Assembly (NCBI GenBank): GCA_021613535.1 | Contig: CP075496.1 | Location: forward strand, 13,516,001 to 13,580,000 | DNA length: 64,000 nucleotides | Direction: 5' to 3' | From: Adineta vaga | Taxonomy: Eukaryota > Animalia > Rotifera | Part shown: positions 3,360-12,975 of the stretch, piece after piece | Layout: every line of letters starts with the position of its first letter | Position numbering within the stretch: position 1 is the first letter of the stretch | Program-made: the position numbers and the translations under genes | The notes under the pieces: model-generated | The model's input: the letters and a program-made list of their open reading frames with translations, nothing else | Database searches by the model: none | What the model was told of the DNA's origin: nothing

Positions 3360-3847
3360 ATGCATCATCACATCAACAGCATCACGTTCCATATCGTGAT
3401 TCAAATTTAACTTATTTACTAAAGAATAGTCTTGGTGGTGATGCAAAAACATTTATGTTAGCAACAATTAGTCCATCATCAACAGTTATTGATGAAACAA
3501 TCAATACATTACGTTATGCTGGTCTGGCATCAACAATAACAAATGTTCCACGAATAAAAACTCCTCATCTTCGTCATGAAATTGATGAATTACGGGAAGA
3601 AAATGCTCGCCTTAAACAAGAACTATTTCTTGTCAAATCAAAATCAATGCCATCAATTCATCCAACAATTCCAATGATTAGTAAAACATCATTGACTAAT
3701 ATTGATGAAGGTATGCAAACAAGCTTTCGACTGGAACCATCGACACCAAATGATGATGATTTAAATAAGGATGAAAGTCTTGATGTTGTTGATGAAGAGG
3801 TAAAGCAATCAATTGATTTGAAAAATCATCTTTTATTTGAGAATTTT
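3360..3847 (+). pseudogene. 488-bp partial duplicate of the kinesin gene (copy of 11976-12463)
   Basis: Ungapped direct alignment with 11 mismatches by manual count. It includes 48 bp of the downstream intron (gtaaagcaatc...) and lacks the N-terminal motor exons. Confidence 0.95.
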
Positions 3848-4499
3848 TAATGCTGTTCATTTAAAATAACTTTCGTTTTGATTTTCAATTCTTAAAACGG
3901 AAACTTACGAAGCATCAACATTTCTTGCCTTTTGAAAAATAAATAAATTACATTGTAGAGCGAATTGTTTTTCGAAACCATCGTGCTTAATGAAAAGCGA
4001 GAAATAGTTAAGAGGAAAGATCGAGAACGGCACAAAACTGTCGTCTAGACGAAATGTCAACAAAAACAATCTTCGTTAAAACGAAAACAATTTTTTGAGC
4101 TGGAGAAAATGGTCTCATTAAGGCCGGAGACGTGAGTGGCATCATTGACGTCACAAAGTACCGACACGATAACAAATTACACTTGAAAAAGACACGAGTT
4201 GCTTGGTTTTTTGCAAGCAAGGAGGGAACTCACACTATAATTCAACCAGACTGGTTCTAGCCCTGCATTCAGTTATAAGCGATGCGTTGAAATTCAAAAT
4301 TACGAATTGCGAGAGTAAAAATATTGACACCATCTTTTCTTACGAAATCAATATTTACTTCACAAATACCTTTTTCTTTACGTTCTTTTTATGAATATCA
4401 AGAGATTGCACAACTGTGAGAAACTATAGAGTTGAAGGAGACAGCGACACTTTCGAGCAATAACAAGAACAATAACACACAACATATCAATACAAAACT

Positions 4500-7400
4500 A
4501 TGTCGACTTTCGTCAAATTACCGGTCGAGTTCGTTTACAGAATTCTTGATCATCTCGACGAATTCACTCTTTTTTGCTCAATGCAAAATGTGTGTCATCG
4601 ATTCAACCAAATTCTGCATACCTACCATCGATATCAAGTAAATCTGTGCTTCTATATAATACTTACTGAGGTTAAACTTCTATGGAAGATAGACGAAATC
4701 ATCCAGTGAATTAAATGGAAAGCAAGTCAGACGATCTATCCATTACAGTATTTCACTGTTCTCGCACATATCTGATGAGGACACAAAATAGATGATTAAT
4801 GTAGTTTTATGTTCTGGATCATTATCATTCTGTTAATTATTTACCTTTCGAAAGTACTTTTTGATAAAATATCCATACCTTTTTCTATGATGCTTCAGTC
4901 GGGCATGCATGGTTGAAGAACAGTACGGTCCGAACAGTGAAAAATCAGATAGCAAACTATTCACGTCAATAAACTGAATCTTGCTTTTATCCGAGCAATT
5001 GTAGAGGAAGACTTAAGTTCTCCATCAATAATACTGCAGAATCACGAGTGCACACAAAGCAGAGTAGAAGTCTATTTTTTAATAGTGTAAAAATACGTAA
5101 ATGATTGCATCCTCAATGTGGGGCAAAATTCGATGTAAAAACGGTTGAGACCAGAAGAACCGCGTTGCCAGCTACAGTGAACAACATTTCGTCTCTAAAT
5201 CTCAGAGTAGATCTCTTTCACTACATCTTGATCAATCACTATCAAAACTTCGATAGACGTTCGCTGCAATTATTTCCATCATCTGACCTCAACATGTTTT
5301 ACATACTAGCAAACACCCACCAGTACTTCTAAACTGTTCTCCCTGTTGACTCATCGCCATATCAGAAAAGATAAATAGGTAATGTTAGTGTAGCATAGAT
5401 TTCAAACATATAAACTGACTCTGGCTGAAGCAGATCTCTATACTGGCCATTCGATCGGAAAGCAAAGTGTACAGTTCTAACGAAAAAACCTCTCGAAATG
5501 AGAAAAACTTCAGATATCAGGGTAATGCCGTCTTACGGAACTTAGTTAGTAGTGAAATATCCCAGCTTGATCTAATCTCTTATTACTTTTTGAAGAAGTT
5601 ATAAGTATTTTATGGTTTCGTCAAAATACACTATTTTCTGTATGGGTTTTAAATTGTTCTTTAAAACAACGATCTGAGTAATGAATATATTTCTTTCTGG
5701 TCACAGTAAAACTTTATTCTGGGAATATTGATTGACTTGGTGCATAGAAACGTGCAGAAACAAAGAGAGTGGGACTGATAGTAGAAGATTTCTTTTTATC
5801 ACTATGTGTCCGAGAGAATCAGCTTCAAGACGTTGTTCAACAAAAAACGAGTATCGCGAATATATTCATATGGAGCTGTTTATAGCTGAAATTATAATGA
5901 CAAACTGGACGAATATGTTACCGCCGTTCAGAGAATAAGTGTTTACTAAACTATTTCAATTATCAAAAATTTGTTTACGCTACAGTATAACACACGCTTT
6001 TTTCGACCAAAAGAACAAATGACTAAAGAAAATATGATAAAAAGTAGAGGAAATCTCAAGGTCAATACGAAGGTCTCTCAGTGATCATTGATTTGTCAAT
6101 TAACCAAGACTCGTCTATACAAACGAAGAAACCAATCATTTCTTAAGAATACGAGAAACAGTCTTACCTAATGGTTCTTACACGCACGAATATGACACTG
6201 CCCTAATTTTCTCGATTCCTGACTCTATGTACAATGGCAGTCAAGCAAATCATACTGATTTTTGTGAGAATTCCAAGAATAAAGAAGATAGTATACACAA
6301 ACCAAACTTTTCCTAGACTTGATCTTTTCTTATCACGGCGTCCGCGCCTAAGTTCTATGACACCGTCATCCATAAAACATTCTAGGCTAAGTACCTATGA
6401 AAGAATGTTAAGGGTCACTTGCAACTCATATACCGCAGCGATATAATCCGACCTGTTCCCGCCTATCCCTGAAAAATGAAAACACGACCAGCATACTTCA
6501 GATATCAGTGAGGATATCAATCAACTCATTTTCTTTCAAACACAATCAAAACAACCTTCTTACGATACTACTCGAACAAAACTCTATCTTTCTCTAACTT
6601 TCTACCGAATACTACATCAATCTATCAATCCAAACGAACAACGCCACTTCTTCAGAGTCTGTTTTCCCCTCTCTTCAATCGATTCTCAAAGAAAATCTAA
6701 AAGCATATTTCAAAAGACTATAGTTTCAATAAAAAAACTTCAATCTCATCCAGAAAAAACCTACCTTAATGAAATCCCAAATCATCCATAACTTCTTCAG
6801 GGAGCAATAAGAAGATCAATCAGCTTAGGATATTTCATTACAAACTAACGACGATAATACGTACGTACTATGACTCTTAAAGATTTTTATCACATCAGAC
6901 AGGCTCCTTATTATCAGAAGCATCAGAAGTGAAGAACGTAACCTTCCTTCATTCTTCGACCGGGTCCTCCTCGCATACTCCTCTCTTGTTTAGACACTCA
7001 CAACACTAAGTCTCTGGAACAATCAAATCACACTTCAAGCAGCAGAGCACTTGGCTGATGCATTACGAGTTAACACGGTAATTGTGATTCACCCTTCGAA
7101 TGTCTCATCTTCTGATACCACTCTCTTGTTTAGACACTCACAACACTAAATCTCTGGTATAACAAAATCACCGTTCAAGAAGCAGAACACTTGGCTGATG
7201 CATTACAAGTTAATACGGTAATCTTCATTCACTGCCCGAGTGTCTTCTCATTTCATACCGCTCTCTTGTTTAGGCACTCAGAACACTCGATCTCGATTCC
7301 AACGAAATCGAAGATAAAGGAGCTCAGCATTTGGCTGATGCATTACTAGTTAACATGGTAATCTTCATTCGTTTCCCGATTGTCTTCTCCTTTCATACCG

Positions 7401-7658
7401 CTCTCTTGTTAAGACAATCACAGCGCTACATCTCAGGAATAACCAAATCAGAGTCCAAGAAGAAGAGCACTTGGCTGATACATTACGAGTAAACACTGTA
7501 ATCGTCTTTCACTCTTCGATTATTTCCTCCTTTGATACCGCTCTCTTGTTTAGACACTCAGAACACTAAATCTCTCTCGCAACCAAATCGGAGATCAAGG
7601 AGCGAAGCACTTGGCTGATGCATTACGAGTTAACACGGTAATCTATATTTTGTTTTGA
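4500..7658 (+). CDS. F-box + ribonuclease-inhibitor-type (NLRC3-like) LRR protein; F-box exon 4500-4637 plus five 84-bp LRR exons
   Basis: The F-box exon MSTFVKLPVEFVYRILDHLDEFTLFCSMQNVCHRFNQILHTYHRYQ ends in phase 0 at a gtaaat donor. LRR exons 6994-7077, 7134-7217, 7274-7357, 7414-7497 and 7554-7637 are all open, phase 0 and GT-AG. Linkage across the 2.36-kb gap and the 3' end (read-through VIYILF*) are inferred. Confidence 0.7.
6981..7642 (+). repeat. Tandem array, exact 140-bp period, about 4.7 units (84-bp LRR exon + 56-bp intron)
   Basis: ctctcttgtt(t/a)ag recurs at 6981, 7121, 7261, 7401 and 7541, and ttggctgat(g/a)cattac recurs in every unit. Confidence 0.97.
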
Positions 7659-10541
7659 TTCCTACATATTTACTCTGATGTTTTTTTTCATTTTGAGTTG
7701 CCGTATTCAGTGTGTGAATTTCTTTCTTTTTTGACATTTGTATGGTGAGGAGACACATTCACGATCGTGGTATTATGCAGACTGGAATAAATCATTGACA
7801 AAATAAAATTAGATTTTTTTTATTTGTAATCGTTTAAGTAATAACCAATTTCTTTGATTTTGTATGATTATGTTCATAAGATATCGAACAGGGAATTATT
7901 CCTGTTTGTGGAGTTTGATCAGAGTAGTAGAATATGAGAGAGTGCGTTCCATATAAGTATAAATGATTGAACCAGTAATGATCGGTTCGACTTTTAACAA
8001 AGACTCATTAGGAGAGAATGAATGTCATATGGGCGTCTCTCAAACTGATGGAAATGAAATGAATAGTAGCACAAGTTTCATCTCATTTACTATATTCTAG
8101 AAAAGTCGCTGGTACTTGTTTAAAGGATTAGTGTACCTGCTGATAAGTGGGATCTATACTCTATTGAATAAACTATGCGATATATAAAATACTTTTGTAT
8201 CTGATGGAATGAAGTGACACAAAGTTGTATTTTCATTGGTGAAGTTGTATTTCGTTCCTCGTGTTTATACCTTCTCTTATAGAAACAGATTTCAATTATT
8301 GATAAAAGAAACATCTGGTACAATGTGGTTGTTCAATTTCTGATGTTTCAACGTATTATATGTATGACCGCGTAACTAGAGGTATTCGTCATGTACCTGA
8401 GTCGATGATTTCAAAATTGCTATCAAAGAAGAAGAACTATCGATCTAGCTATGATCGAAACCGAAATGAAGTGTTTTGACTTTGTATTGCTAAGTTGTCA
8501 TTGTTAATTTGAAAGTGAGGATGAAATAATACATTTATGGAATGCACGTAGTTCAAATAATTGCAAAATAATTCATCGTCTCGAAAACGCTACTTAACAG
8601 TATATTACAATTAGGTATTTCCATCGATTATCTAAGAAAACATGTCGAAAGAAAAACATGACTTTCGTATTTTTGTTTCTGTTTTTCCACCAGTGTTCTT
8701 TGATCCATTCATGCAGAGACAATCATTATTTATCGTGAACAATAAACTTGTTACAGATGGATCACAACAGTTGATTAGGAATATCAATCAATACGTTCTG
8801 ATATCAACAACAATGGATTGTGAAGTAGAATTTAGTTTTGGTAGTAATACAAATGATCTTAGCAGCCTGAAATATGTTGTGGAGTCGAATCAATTTGACA
8901 CTTATATCTACTTTTGCTCCTGCATTATGATTCTATGTATTTATTCATTTACAAAGACGATTATAGATTAACAAGTAAAATTTTAGAAAACAATCCTTGA
9001 TTTTTATAGCAACTGTTCAAATGCAAATCTTATGTGTTGAGTTAGAGACCATAAGATTTTTGTAGTGAACGTCATATTGACATTGACATATTTTGTAAAA
9101 ATAACGACATAGAAGGATTACAAGTGATGAGAAAACCAGATATGATCGTCTTACAGATGATTCATCTCGTTCGACTTTTGAGTTTGTATCTATATTTTCT
9201 GCATTTCTATGGAATACAGATATCATGCATAAAACACTAAAATAGTCTAGAGAAAACCACTTTCACCATCTTTCTATTCACAATATCCTGGATGAAAGTT
9301 GGCTAAAACGTTTGAAAAAATTTTCGATTCGATTTGTCATTATTCACAATAACATATGTAGATACGCATATTTGATAAATATATGTACAACTATTGATTA
9401 CTAAACTTCATTCTACTATCTTCAACGTAAGATAGGCAACGAAGGCATATCAAACTTAACACTTCGTCATGAAGAGATTTCTAATTTTACCCAAAAAAAG
9501 AAGCAACTCAATATTTTTATATCATATGATTAATTCTTCTCCAATAAGTCATACGTGTGAATCAATCGAAGGTGATAGTGAATAGAATAGTAATAATCAT
9601 TCTGTTAAGTTTATTTTTTGGATTAGAGCAAAAGAAAAGCTTAAATTTAATTATAACTATATCTTTGACAGCAAAGTAAAAAGATTTTTCTTCTCCTAAT
9701 TCTCATCGAACGCAGATATGAAATATGAACATATGATTGATAGACAATTAGATTTCCTTACCTTCAAGATTGCTTTTGGAATAAATTGCTGATGTTAACA
9801 AATAAGCGTAGAAACTATATAGATGAGAACAACAATTGATTCGATTAAAATTTCAATACTCATTTTATCAAAAGTATTTCGTGTATCTAATGTTATTATA
9901 AAATACAATCTAACTCTGAATAAAGTCAAAGTGAAGCTCGAACATCATACAATTTATATGAATAAGATACATGTTAATTGATGATCAATGTGTTGTGCTT
10001 CGATTTGTTGTAGAAATCCAAAAGATTTTTTAAGATTCCGATGCTTTAAATGAGAGGTCTACGAGACATAGAAACGTGCATTTCTACGTTTAGTCACATA
10101 AGATACAGATTATAAATTCCCTCTAGTCCTTTTAGTCCCCTTCATTTGTTTCAATTAGATACTTTAGCGACGAAGAATTCATTGAGAATAAGATTTTCAC
10201 CCACACCCAAGAATATAATTATTTTTCCATTTTTCTCAATTGATATTCAATAAAGAAATTAGAGTCAATTGAATGTTAGATATTGAAACAAAGACCAAGC
10301 ACTATATGCGACATCTATTTAAATTTGATTTGATTGAAAAGTACATTGACATTAACGCTCAAAATGTTCGTTCTTTCTTTCGTTTCTGTTCCTTCCATTC
10401 ACGAACATACGATCGCGTTAAAGCGGCAAAGTGTATTGTTTTGGAATTCTCTGTGAGATACTATTTTTTCCTTTTTCAACGAACAATCATTCATATTGCA
10501 TTGTAAATGATTCAATATTTATTTTAGATTGTTCTCTTCAT

Positions 10542-12975
10542 ATGGCGCATCGTTTGAATCAGCTGCGTACATCAACTTCTACAACTCGTAAGTATCATTA
10601 ATTATTCATCTGTTCTCAATTGAGAAGTTTTTCTTTCAGACGAACAATTCCTGGCATCAACAACAACTCTCACTTCATCTCCACGTACACCAGGAAAAAA
10701 ATTAACTAAAGGTGATCCAATTATTACTGGTATTCGACTTCGACCATTTCTTGAACGGTTTGTCCTTGAATTTCACTTTCTTTTTTGATATTTTATTATC
10801 TTTAACAGAGAATCTGTAATCGATGATACACCTGCTGTACAAATATACGAAAGTAATGTTATTTGTACACAAAATAATCGTCCACAAATATTCAAATTTA
10901 CTAATTGTTTCGATGCTTCGGCAACAAATGTAAGTTGAATAAATTAGAGTTTTCCAAAGAAAAAGAAAATTATGTTTGTTTGTTTTTTCTTAGAAAATTG
11001 TTTATGATGGAATGATTCGACCAGCTGTGTTGGCCTCTTTACAAGGTTTGATTATCATTATAATCGAAATTTAGCATAAGTTGAATTTTTTCATTGATTT
11101 AGGTTATAATACAACAGTATTAGCCTATGGTCAAACAGCATCGGGTAAATCACATTCAATATTTGGTTCACCAAGTGAAGAAGGCATCTTATCACTGAGT
11201 ATTCATGATCTAACAACAATGAATGCTAAAAATCATCTAAAATTCGAATTAAGTTTTCTTGAAATATATAATGAAAAAGTTACAGATCTACTTGCAACTC
11301 CTACATTATCTACCGATCAATTAAATACAAAATCTTCTACGAAAACTTCGACAAGTTCATCATTTTCTAAAAATGCTCGTACACATATTCTTAATAAACT
11401 TGTTCCCAGTACTAATCCCACCAATCCTTCAACACGTACACTTGAAATTCGTGAACATCCTTTACTTGGTCCCTATGTACCTGATTTAAAATATATTCAA
11501 GTTAAAACAAAAGAAGATTTCCAAAATGTTCTCAATCTTGGTAATCAACAACGATCTGTCGCATCAACAAATGCAAATCAACGATCATCAAGATCACATG
11601 CAATATTTACTCTAAAAATCAGTCGCACAGATGTACCACAATCATCAGCCGTACGTTTATCATTTGGGTCGAGTTCAACGAATTCATCAACAAATATTCA
11701 TAAACTTGCAGCATTAACCAATTCATCAAAGAAAAATGCAAAACAACAAGCACAAGAAGAAATTGATGCACAAGCTGTACGATTAAATTTTGTTGATCTA
11801 GCTGGAAGTGAAAAATCACAACAATACAATGGTCCTCAAGGAAAAAATGATCGTTTTGCGGTAAGAATCAAAGAATGTAAACCATTAATCAAATCAAATA
11901 AAGTATATCTTTTCTTTTCTCACTAGGAAAGTGTACATATTAATCAATCGTTATCTACACTTCGGAATGTTATCGATGCATTATCACGTCAACAACATCA
12001 CGTTCCATATCGTGATTCAAATTTAACTTATTTACTAAAGAATAGTCTTGGTGGCGATGCAAAAACATTTATGTTAGCAACAATTAGTCCATCATCAACA
12101 GTTATTGATGAAACAATCAATACATTACGTTATGCTGGTCTTGCATCAACAATAACAAATGTTCCACGAATAAAAACTCCTCATCTTCGTCATGAAATTG
12201 ATGAATTACGGGAAGAAAATGCTCGACTTAAACAAGAACTATTTCTTGTCAAATCAAAATCAATGCCATCAATTCATCCAACAATACCGATGATTAGTAA
12301 AACATCATTGACCAATATTGATGAAGGTATACAAACAAGCTTTCGAATGGAACCATCGACACCAAATGATGATGATTTAAATAAGGATGAAAGTCTTGAT
12401 GTTGTTGATGAAGAGGTAAAGCAATCAATTGATTTGAAAAATCATCTTTTATTTGAGAATTTTCTATGTTTAGATTTTAGCACAAATTGAAAACCAATGT
12501 CGCCGTCCTAAAAGACAACGATTATCCGAACAACCGCTTCATGAAATTGGTTTGTTTATATTGACAAACTTGACATCATTTTCATTTGATTTATTCTTTA
12601 GCAAAACTTCGTAAAATTGATGATACAATGCCTTCATCGACGACTAGGAACCATTCTTAGTTGTGTTACCGACGATTTTTCCGTAAATACAAATTATATT
12701 TTCAAGTTTTATAATCTGTCAATATATTTATTCTAGATAATTAATGACGATGGTATTCTTGTTGTTTCCAATGAATTGAATATAGATGTGAAAATGTCCT
12801 CGAAAGCATGGATGAATGCATTAGAAAGATTTGATCGAGATATAAATATAGATTATATGACAAAGAAAGAAGTAAGTAAAACAATTTGAAATAAAAATGC
12901 GATGAATTAAAGAATTTGTCTTTCTTTTAGATTCTCAATTCTCTAAATCTTCTTTTTGATACGAATCAAGACTAA
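10542..12975 (+). CDS. Kinesin motor protein, kinesin-3/KIF14-like, short tail (multi-exon)
   Basis: Motifs include IRLRPF, the P-loop AYGQTASGKSHS, SFLEIYNEKVTDLL, IREHPLLGPYVPDL, switch I NQRSSRSHAIF, switch II FVDLAGSE and [30 protein letters not shown]. The subfamily is tentative. Confidence 0.9.

Follow-up and report, generated by a model that had tools for sequence, protein, structure and literature searches.

Gene model and transcripts

The window, meaning the whole 64,000-nucleotide (nt) stretch of DNA analyzed here, corresponds to C4:13,516,001-13,580,000 of a 6-contig, 100.8-Mb assembly of the rotifer Adineta vaga and is AT rich (G+C content of about 30%). Positions 4500-7658 on its plus strand are an expressed six-exon gene, in which an F-box exon is followed by five exons that each encode a single leucine-rich repeat (LRR). 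The predicted product appears to have about 192 amino acids (aa), being composed of a 46-aa F-box, five 28-aa LRRs of the ribonuclease inhibitor (RI) type, and a 6-aa tail.

Tandem Repeats Finder (TRF) reports a single array at 6965-7643 (period 140, 4.8 copies, 77% matches, 0 indels, score 756). Slicing the sequence at 6938+140n results in five 56-nt GT..AG stretches and five stop-free 84-nt exons, where each phase-0 exon encodes one 28-aa RI-type LRR and the spacing is exactly 140 bp. An earlier annotation of this DNA, which was made from the letters alone and is referred to here as the original prediction, described five exact 140-bp units with the same translations, and the slicing reproduces both. 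It also read every unit as an 84-nt exon plus a 56-nt GT-AG intron, which holds for three introns seen spliced out in RNA, whereas the first of the 56-nt stretches, 6938-6993, is the final part of the much longer intron 1.

The transcript evidence comes from contigs of four public Adineta vaga runs, aligned to window positions 4200-9200. Exon 1 (4500-4637) starts with the ATG, encodes the 46-aa F-box, and ends in phase 0, as indicated by Pfam, by the ratio of nonsynonymous to synonymous changes (dN/dS), and by an RNA joint. This joint, 4637>6994, is given by a mismatch-free contig of run X3 that links 4539-4637 to 6994-7070 and skips the 2,356 nt of intron 1 (4638-6993, GT..AG, with no RNA depth at 4868-6871), so the F-box exon is spliced in phase 0 directly to LRR exon 1. 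The F-box transcript thus carries an LRR in frame, in the place of the C-terminal interaction domain of F-box proteins, as the original prediction had proposed when it joined the array to an F-box.

LRR exon 1 (TLTTLSLWNNQITLQAAEHLADALRVNT; 6994-7077), which is supported by slicing and RNA, is without the family-conserved residues G13 and G16. The 56-nt GT..AG intron behind it (7078-7133) is assigned by slicing, its junction being absent among the listed RNA contigs. LRR exon 2 (7134-7217) is found on an RNA contig covering 7167-7217 that is spliced to 7274, and the following intron (7218-7273) is removed by the joint 7217>7274 in run X2. LRR exon 3 (7274-7357), with RNA joints on its borders, precedes an intron ending in TAAG (7358-7413; joint 7357>7414 in runs X2 and X3), followed by LRR exon 4 (7414-7497), the most degenerate unit with five scaffold deviations, a last 56-nt intron (7498-7553; joint 7497>7554 in runs X2 and X3), and the canonical unit, LRR exon 5 (7554-7637). 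The RNA joints come from two runs of two studies. All splice sites are intact, as is the open frame across the six exons. The LRR exons all have 84 nt and phase 0 on both sides and are seen spliced at these borders, which identifies them as cassette exons and bears out the predicted phase-0 exon/intron model.

Within 4200-9200, no contig of the four runs shows a splice leaving 7637, and a contig of run X1 covers 7647-7918 unbroken with one mismatch. The frame therefore likely continues through the former donor site into a 6-codon tail, VIYILF, and the stop codon TGA at 7656-7658 (tail and stop, 7638-7658, by read-through translation), followed by a probable 3' untranslated region (UTR) at 7659-7918. 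For a spliced terminal exon after 7637, with 7697 as a candidate acceptor, no joint is seen, and 7647-7918 is covered without a break. Upstream of the ATG, cDNA contigs of run X5 over 4289-4503, whose strand is ambiguous, mark 4289-4499 as an upstream region and probable 5' UTR.

Four further observations concern the transcripts. RNA contigs covering 4613-4826, from two runs of one study, read through the exon 1 donor at 4637; they could represent intron retention or a short transcript with only a 69-aa F-box open reading frame (ORF; 4500-4709). A 2013 cDNA contig (4474-4582) ends at 4582 in the reverse complement of a sequence resembling what we take to be a SMART-type template-switch oligo; if it is this oligo, a minus-strand (antisense) RNA would have its 5' end there, within the F-box exon. 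One RNA contig shows the joint 7076>7553 (7047-7077 to 7554 onwards), with 31 nt on one side that are identical in the ends of LRR exons 1 and 5, so the joint is ambiguous; skipping of exons 2 to 4, an extra unit in the other haplotype, and a k-mer assembly artefact are all possible. Other contigs are 95-96% identical to the window (for example, with C>T at 7455 and an exon 4 that ends differently), suggesting that a second allele is expressed.

Domain identity of the cassettes and the F-box

The exons were searched one by one in Pfam and PDB. LRR exons 3 and 5 score above the LRR_6 cut-off of 23.4 bits (23.5 and 29.6 bits, respectively), and exon 4 has no Pfam match. In the PDB, LRR exon 5 (7554-7637) matches ribonuclease inhibitor chains with an E value of 5.7e-14, and one LRR exon also matches the LRRs of NLRP and RanGAP proteins. 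The RI-type assignment of the original prediction holds because of these LRR_6 scores and PDB matches, together with a repeat length of exactly 28 aa. Among PDB sequences, LRR exon 5 is best matched by a GALA protein, which is a bacterial F-box/LRR effector (E value 7.3e-20) and ranks ahead of ribonuclease inhibitor.

The F-box exon contains the LPxE...IL..L pattern and matches the F-box-like family (PF12937) with an E value of 3.8e-5 and 23.8 bits (cut-off 24.3), followed by PF00646 with 19.1 bits (cut-off 20.5). Its dN/dS among three collinear paralogues, described below, is 0.07-0.12, which shows strong purifying selection on the F-box. We also modeled the F-box exon together with the Skp1 exon encoded in this genome; the predicted complex scores 0.47 against 0.02 for the best control, a verdict of weak support that may reflect likeness to solved complexes. 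The mark for this score is reached by 51 of 78 solved complexes and by 2 of 108 mismatched pairs, and the F-box/Skp1 runs agree in at least 93% of contacts with a partner predicted local distance difference test (pLDDT) value of at least 72. The model is faintly suggestive of a protein that docks on Skp1 as a substrate receptor of the Skp1-cullin-F-box (SCF) ubiquitin ligase.

A gene family of F-box and LRR cassettes

A genome search with the 700-bp array results in 98 DNA matches. Every family locus examined combines 84-nt exons with 54-59-nt introns at periods of 138-143 bp, and the family loci comprise dozens of cassette arrays with 4 to more than 20 units per array. The search with the F-box exon, in which 150 matches were scored of 218 candidates, found among those scored at least 62 copies that match nearly the whole exon with an identity of 70% or higher. 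These matches point to a family of well over 60 F-box plus cassette-LRR genes. The copies are enriched toward the chromosome ends, with 74% of the 62 lying in the outer 40% of the chromosomes (p = 7e-8); the distance between the locus described here and the end of C4 is 1.7 Mb.

Window positions 4287-10037 (about 5.7 kb), including the long intron 1, have collinear counterparts of 65-79% identity at two other loci, C5:14.918-14.925 Mb and C6:2.362-2.368 Mb, and the blastn similarity to both begins at 4287-4289. The three collinear paralogues carry 5 (window), 11 (C5), and 1 (C6) units, so unit number varies among close relatives, and the count of loci and units suggested in the original prediction thus returns many loci with a wide range of array lengths.

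We found no description of such a family in rotifers, searching the accessible literature for F-box/LRR cassettes, and expanded LRR families of A. vaga are noted in general terms only (PMC3846280). The rotifer F-box/LRR cassette family is apparently undescribed.

Selection on the concave face and evolution of the introns

Across 176 distinct units, the entropy is highest at positions 8 and 9 (3.4 bits), with positions 11, 6, 14, and 4 next, and these high-entropy positions are the x positions of the LxxLxLxxNxL pattern. For the divergence analysis the site classes were preset as {6,8,9}, {4,6,8,9}, and {3,4,6,8,9,11}, using disjoint nearest-neighbor pairs, and the ratio of the proportion of nonsynonymous differences (pN) on the concave face to the pooled proportion of synonymous differences (pS) has a bootstrap range of 1.7-3.4 in the family pairs. 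In a design free of selection bias, the pairs were picked on one flanking intron and everything else was measured. The divergence of the other intron is then 0.065-0.075 and pS is 0.082-0.093, whereas pN reaches 0.25-0.27 on the concave face (codons 4, 6, 8, and 9) and 0.053-0.058 in the rest of the exon, all of these values being pairwise counts on recombining repeats. On these paired divergences, the binding face changes about three times faster than the neutral proxies and the scaffold is constrained.

The original prediction described the intron 3' ends as nearly fixed and proposed the introns as recombination handles. The first statement stands within the array, where the near-fixed ends are pyrimidine-rich splice signals together with shared ancestry; across the family the 3'-end motif varies between subfamilies, and the introns overall are no better kept than third codon positions. 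In the window array, introns are 70-89% identical, compared with 68-89% for third codon positions, and the family-wide information content is 1.37 bits in the first 24 nt and 0.92 bits in the last 32 nt of the intron, compared with 1.27 bits at third codon positions and 1.46 bits at fourfold sites. We rejected the idea of specially conserved recombination handles, as the introns evolve like synonymous sites in the paired comparison and show no extra conservation. The idea is also unneeded because the whole 140-bp unit is homologous.

Turnover of the arrays

A tree built from the 140-bp units groups the five of the window in a single clade (support 91/90) and places the eleven from the C5 paralogue in a separate one (96/94). 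Because the units cluster by array, arrays expand or homogenize within a locus. The terminal branches are 0.08-0.2 long in the window array and 0-0.07 in the C5 array, which indicates that the window array is old, with no recent duplication, and that the C5 array is young.

The C5 array (C5:14920346-14922047) consists of 11 nearly homogenized cassettes, of which two are 99% identical, and carries half-exon relics at both ends. Its framework pS is 0.019 and its framework pN 0.066, compared with a concave pN of 0.42. Judged by its sequence, the C5 array is much more active than the window array. The five window units deviate from family-conserved scaffold residues ten times, compared with eight times in the eleven C5 units. 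The window gene is an old, short, static, and partly degenerate member of the family with a partly eroded LRR scaffold.

Function and alternative explanations

We consider it probable that the locus is an expressed F-box/cassette-LRR gene of a large family, encoding a putative SCF receptor whose concave face would pick the substrate. In such a protein the F-box would dock on Skp1, making it a substrate receptor of the SCF ligase, and the concave face of the LRRs would select the substrate. Unequal recombination at any point of the repeat would add or remove whole 140-bp units, and the reading frame would survive this because the exons are in phase 0. Given how fast the binding-face residues evolve, these genes may together form a variable recognition system. 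For the family, a reading as cassettes and an immune repertoire is plausible, and for the window gene it is putative.

Several points weigh against this interpretation. The F-box exon has no sequence match in the PDB and its Pfam score is just below the cut-off, while the Skp1 prediction is weak and could be the model's memory of solved F-box/Skp1 complexes. The RNA label of the runs is a guess, although the GT..AG joints argue strongly for RNA, and one run also carries an apparent SMART-type template-switch oligo. The end of the ORF is inferred, since bases 7636-7646 are bridged by no listed contig. The nearly invariant G16, present in 170 of 176 family units, is missing in three of the five window units, and the framework omega (dN/dS) of the window array is 0.53-0.63, compared with 0.3-0.5 in the family; the missing G16 and this omega suggest a relaxed constraint in the window copy. 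The nonsynonymous excess at concave positions, which the original prediction expected of the array, is found family-wide and is absent within the window array itself, where the concave omega is about 0.9 at saturated sites.

A first alternative is that the genes encode ordinary housekeeping or regulatory F-box/LRR adaptors, whose numbers rose through segmental or transposon-mediated duplication in the gene-poor ends of chromosomes, with the organism's own proteins as targets and no defense role. F-box/LRR proteins are normal SCF receptors (PMC8120010), and A. vaga is reported to have expanded many repeat-protein families, including LRR families, which were sometimes moved by Penelope elements (PMC3846280). 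Moreover, the main text of a published transcriptome paper on fungal infection of A. vaga makes no mention of F-box, LRR, or ubiquitin. However, a concave pN three times as high as pS and the intron divergence is hard to square with fixed endogenous substrates, and the same pattern in nematode and plant F-box families is read as conflict driven (Thomas 2006, as cited in PMC8120010). We regard this alternative as somewhat unlikely.

The signs of erosion could also mean that the window copy is decaying, a transcribed and functionally relaxed remnant en route to a pseudogene whose variable positions merely drift. The excess of scaffold deviations relative to the C5 array, LRR exon 4 without its Pfam match, the raised framework omega together with the concave omega near 1, the decayed unit relics at the array edge, the reduction of the C6 paralogue to one unit, and the long unit branches without a recent duplication are all consistent with decay. 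On the other hand, the frame is open over six exons with splice sites that are intact and used, the F-box dN/dS of 0.09-0.12 against the paralogues shows long-term constraint, and the framework omega of the window array is still below 1, which makes decay toward a pseudogene unlikely. The window gene is a genuine but ordinary ageing member of the family and is not the best choice for functional work.

A more specific form of the SCF-receptor reading is a germline repertoire of more than 100 receptors that would tag foreign proteins, from pathogens, viruses, or transposons, for degradation, where duplication, loss, and exchange of cassettes and positive selection on the concave face would create new specificities. 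We think that this version is quite unlikely to be right. Alternative splicing at the level of cassettes might add further diversity, of which the ambiguous junction between LRR exons 1 and 5 would be a first hint.

That the gene is a passenger or weapon of a mobile element, spread by a transposon and possibly serving the element over the host, is very unlikely, since, in spite of the 5.7 kb of collinearity with two loci, the recurrence of parts of the downstream flank at 4 to 5 loci, and the enrichment toward chromosome ends, only two full loci have these flanks in common with the window copy (65-79% identity), the similarity between the C5 and C6 loci reaches further upstream than the window copy with no common terminus visible, no ORF exceeds 110 aa at 7.7-11 kb and Pfam returns nothing there, and neither a transposase nor Rep nor terminal repeats turn up at the locus, where no search was aimed at Helitron ends.

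Bdelloid rotifers are the standard example of ancient asexuality in animals, which raises the question of how they keep up with their pathogens. If the SCF-receptor reading is true, a large, fast-evolving set of ubiquitin-ligase receptors, assembled from LRR cassettes that preserve the reading frame, would plausibly serve for recognition inside the cell. It would also be the equivalent, in an animal, of the LRR families that brown algae and ciliates diversify by exon shuffling. The locus adds a clean, RNA-supported gene model and is an example of an old, shrinking array next to an actively expanding paralogue.

Comparison with known systems

The rotifer genes resemble the ROCO/LRR genes of the brown alga Ectocarpus (Zambounis et al. 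2012, PMC3341825) in having one fixed-length phase-0 exon per LRR, exon numbers that vary among paralogues, and inactivated exon relics in introns. The positive selection on the concave face described there has its parallel in the nonsynonymous excess across the rotifer family, and the authors propose a germline-diversified recognition repertoire. The algal exon has 72 nt (24 aa, plant-specific type) and the partner domain is a Roc-COR GTPase, whereas the rotifer exon has 84 nt (28 aa, RI type) and is joined to an F-box, in an animal with tiny introns of 54-59 nt. These resemblances do not imply homology beyond the LRR fold itself.

The 90-bp-exon LRR genes of Tetrahymena (Xiong et al. 2019, PMC6564038) are likewise composed of uniform-length exon plus intron units, are enriched toward chromosome ends, and have unequal crossing-over as the proposed engine. 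The ciliate has thousands of units in arrays of 1 to 50, with lineage-specific clonal expansions. Its introns are in phase 2 and about 122-257 nt long next to 90-nt exons, compared with phase 0, 54-59 nt, and 84 nt in the rotifer, and its selection is reported to be mostly purifying, with no F-box, unlike the rotifer family. The exon lengths, phases, and partner domains suggest that the rotifer family and the algal and ciliate families are independent in origin (PMC3341825, PMC6564038).

The F-box families of Caenorhabditis and plants, as described in PMC8120010 and in Thomas (2006) cited there, share the combination of an N-terminal F-box under purifying selection with a positively selected substrate-binding domain, and also have hundreds of paralogues that cluster away from chromosome centers and are proposed to meet changing targets. 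Their binding domains are mostly FTH or FBA and lack a one-repeat-per-exon build, unlike the rotifer LRR cassettes. A somatic assembly of the type known from the variable lymphocyte receptors (VLRs) of lampreys, in which flanking cassettes are copied in to complete an incomplete germline gene, is not seen at this locus, where the germline gene is complete and conventionally spliced and the mRNA junctions follow the genomic order in the germline and RNA sequences compared.

The LRRs of ribonuclease inhibitor and of NLR proteins belong to the same RI-like class of 28-29 aa. In their genes, the exon boundaries follow the repeat units symmetrically, and an RI or NLRP exon encodes two repeats (about 57 aa), compared with one in the rotifer. 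These proteins have no partner domain or a NACHT domain instead of the F-box. Vertebrate FBXL proteins (e.g., Skp2) and the bacterial GALA effectors share the order of an F-box followed by LRRs. FBXL repeats contain cysteine and have about 26 aa, GALA repeats have 24 aa, and to our knowledge neither is built from exon cassettes.

Intron 1 and flanking sequence

Upstream of the array, within intron 1, positions 6854-6937 are 42-44% identical to the live exons (background 95th percentile 37%, 99.9th percentile 45%) and hold a stop codon, indicating a weak, decayed LRR exon relic. At the equivalent position of the C5 paralogue, half of an exon survives as a clearer relic. A search of the 2.36-kb intron 1 for a hidden exon or a nested gene found nothing: its ORFs are below 76 aa and without a Pfam match, and RNA depth is absent. 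A recent insertion as the source of the long intron is ruled out by the C5 and C6 paralogues, whose collinear introns are about 2.7 and 3.1 kb long and 64-76% identical to intron 1.

Downstream of the gene, a noncoding-looking stretch at 8258-9356 recurs at 4 to 5 loci with 70-79% identity, and two of these loci, C5:8.512 Mb and C6:2.006 Mb, have no matching LRR array next to them. A 109-aa ORF (8642-8971) lies within the window's stretch; Pfam returns nothing for it, and it is not covered by RNA.

The gene is bracketed by a 488-bp direct repeat, at 3360-3847 and 11976-12463. The repeat is a piece of the last exon of a kinesin gene at about 11081-12490, and the upstream copy (3360-3847) has no motor-domain exons before it. 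The two copies are 97.7% identical, which suggests that the repeat is young.

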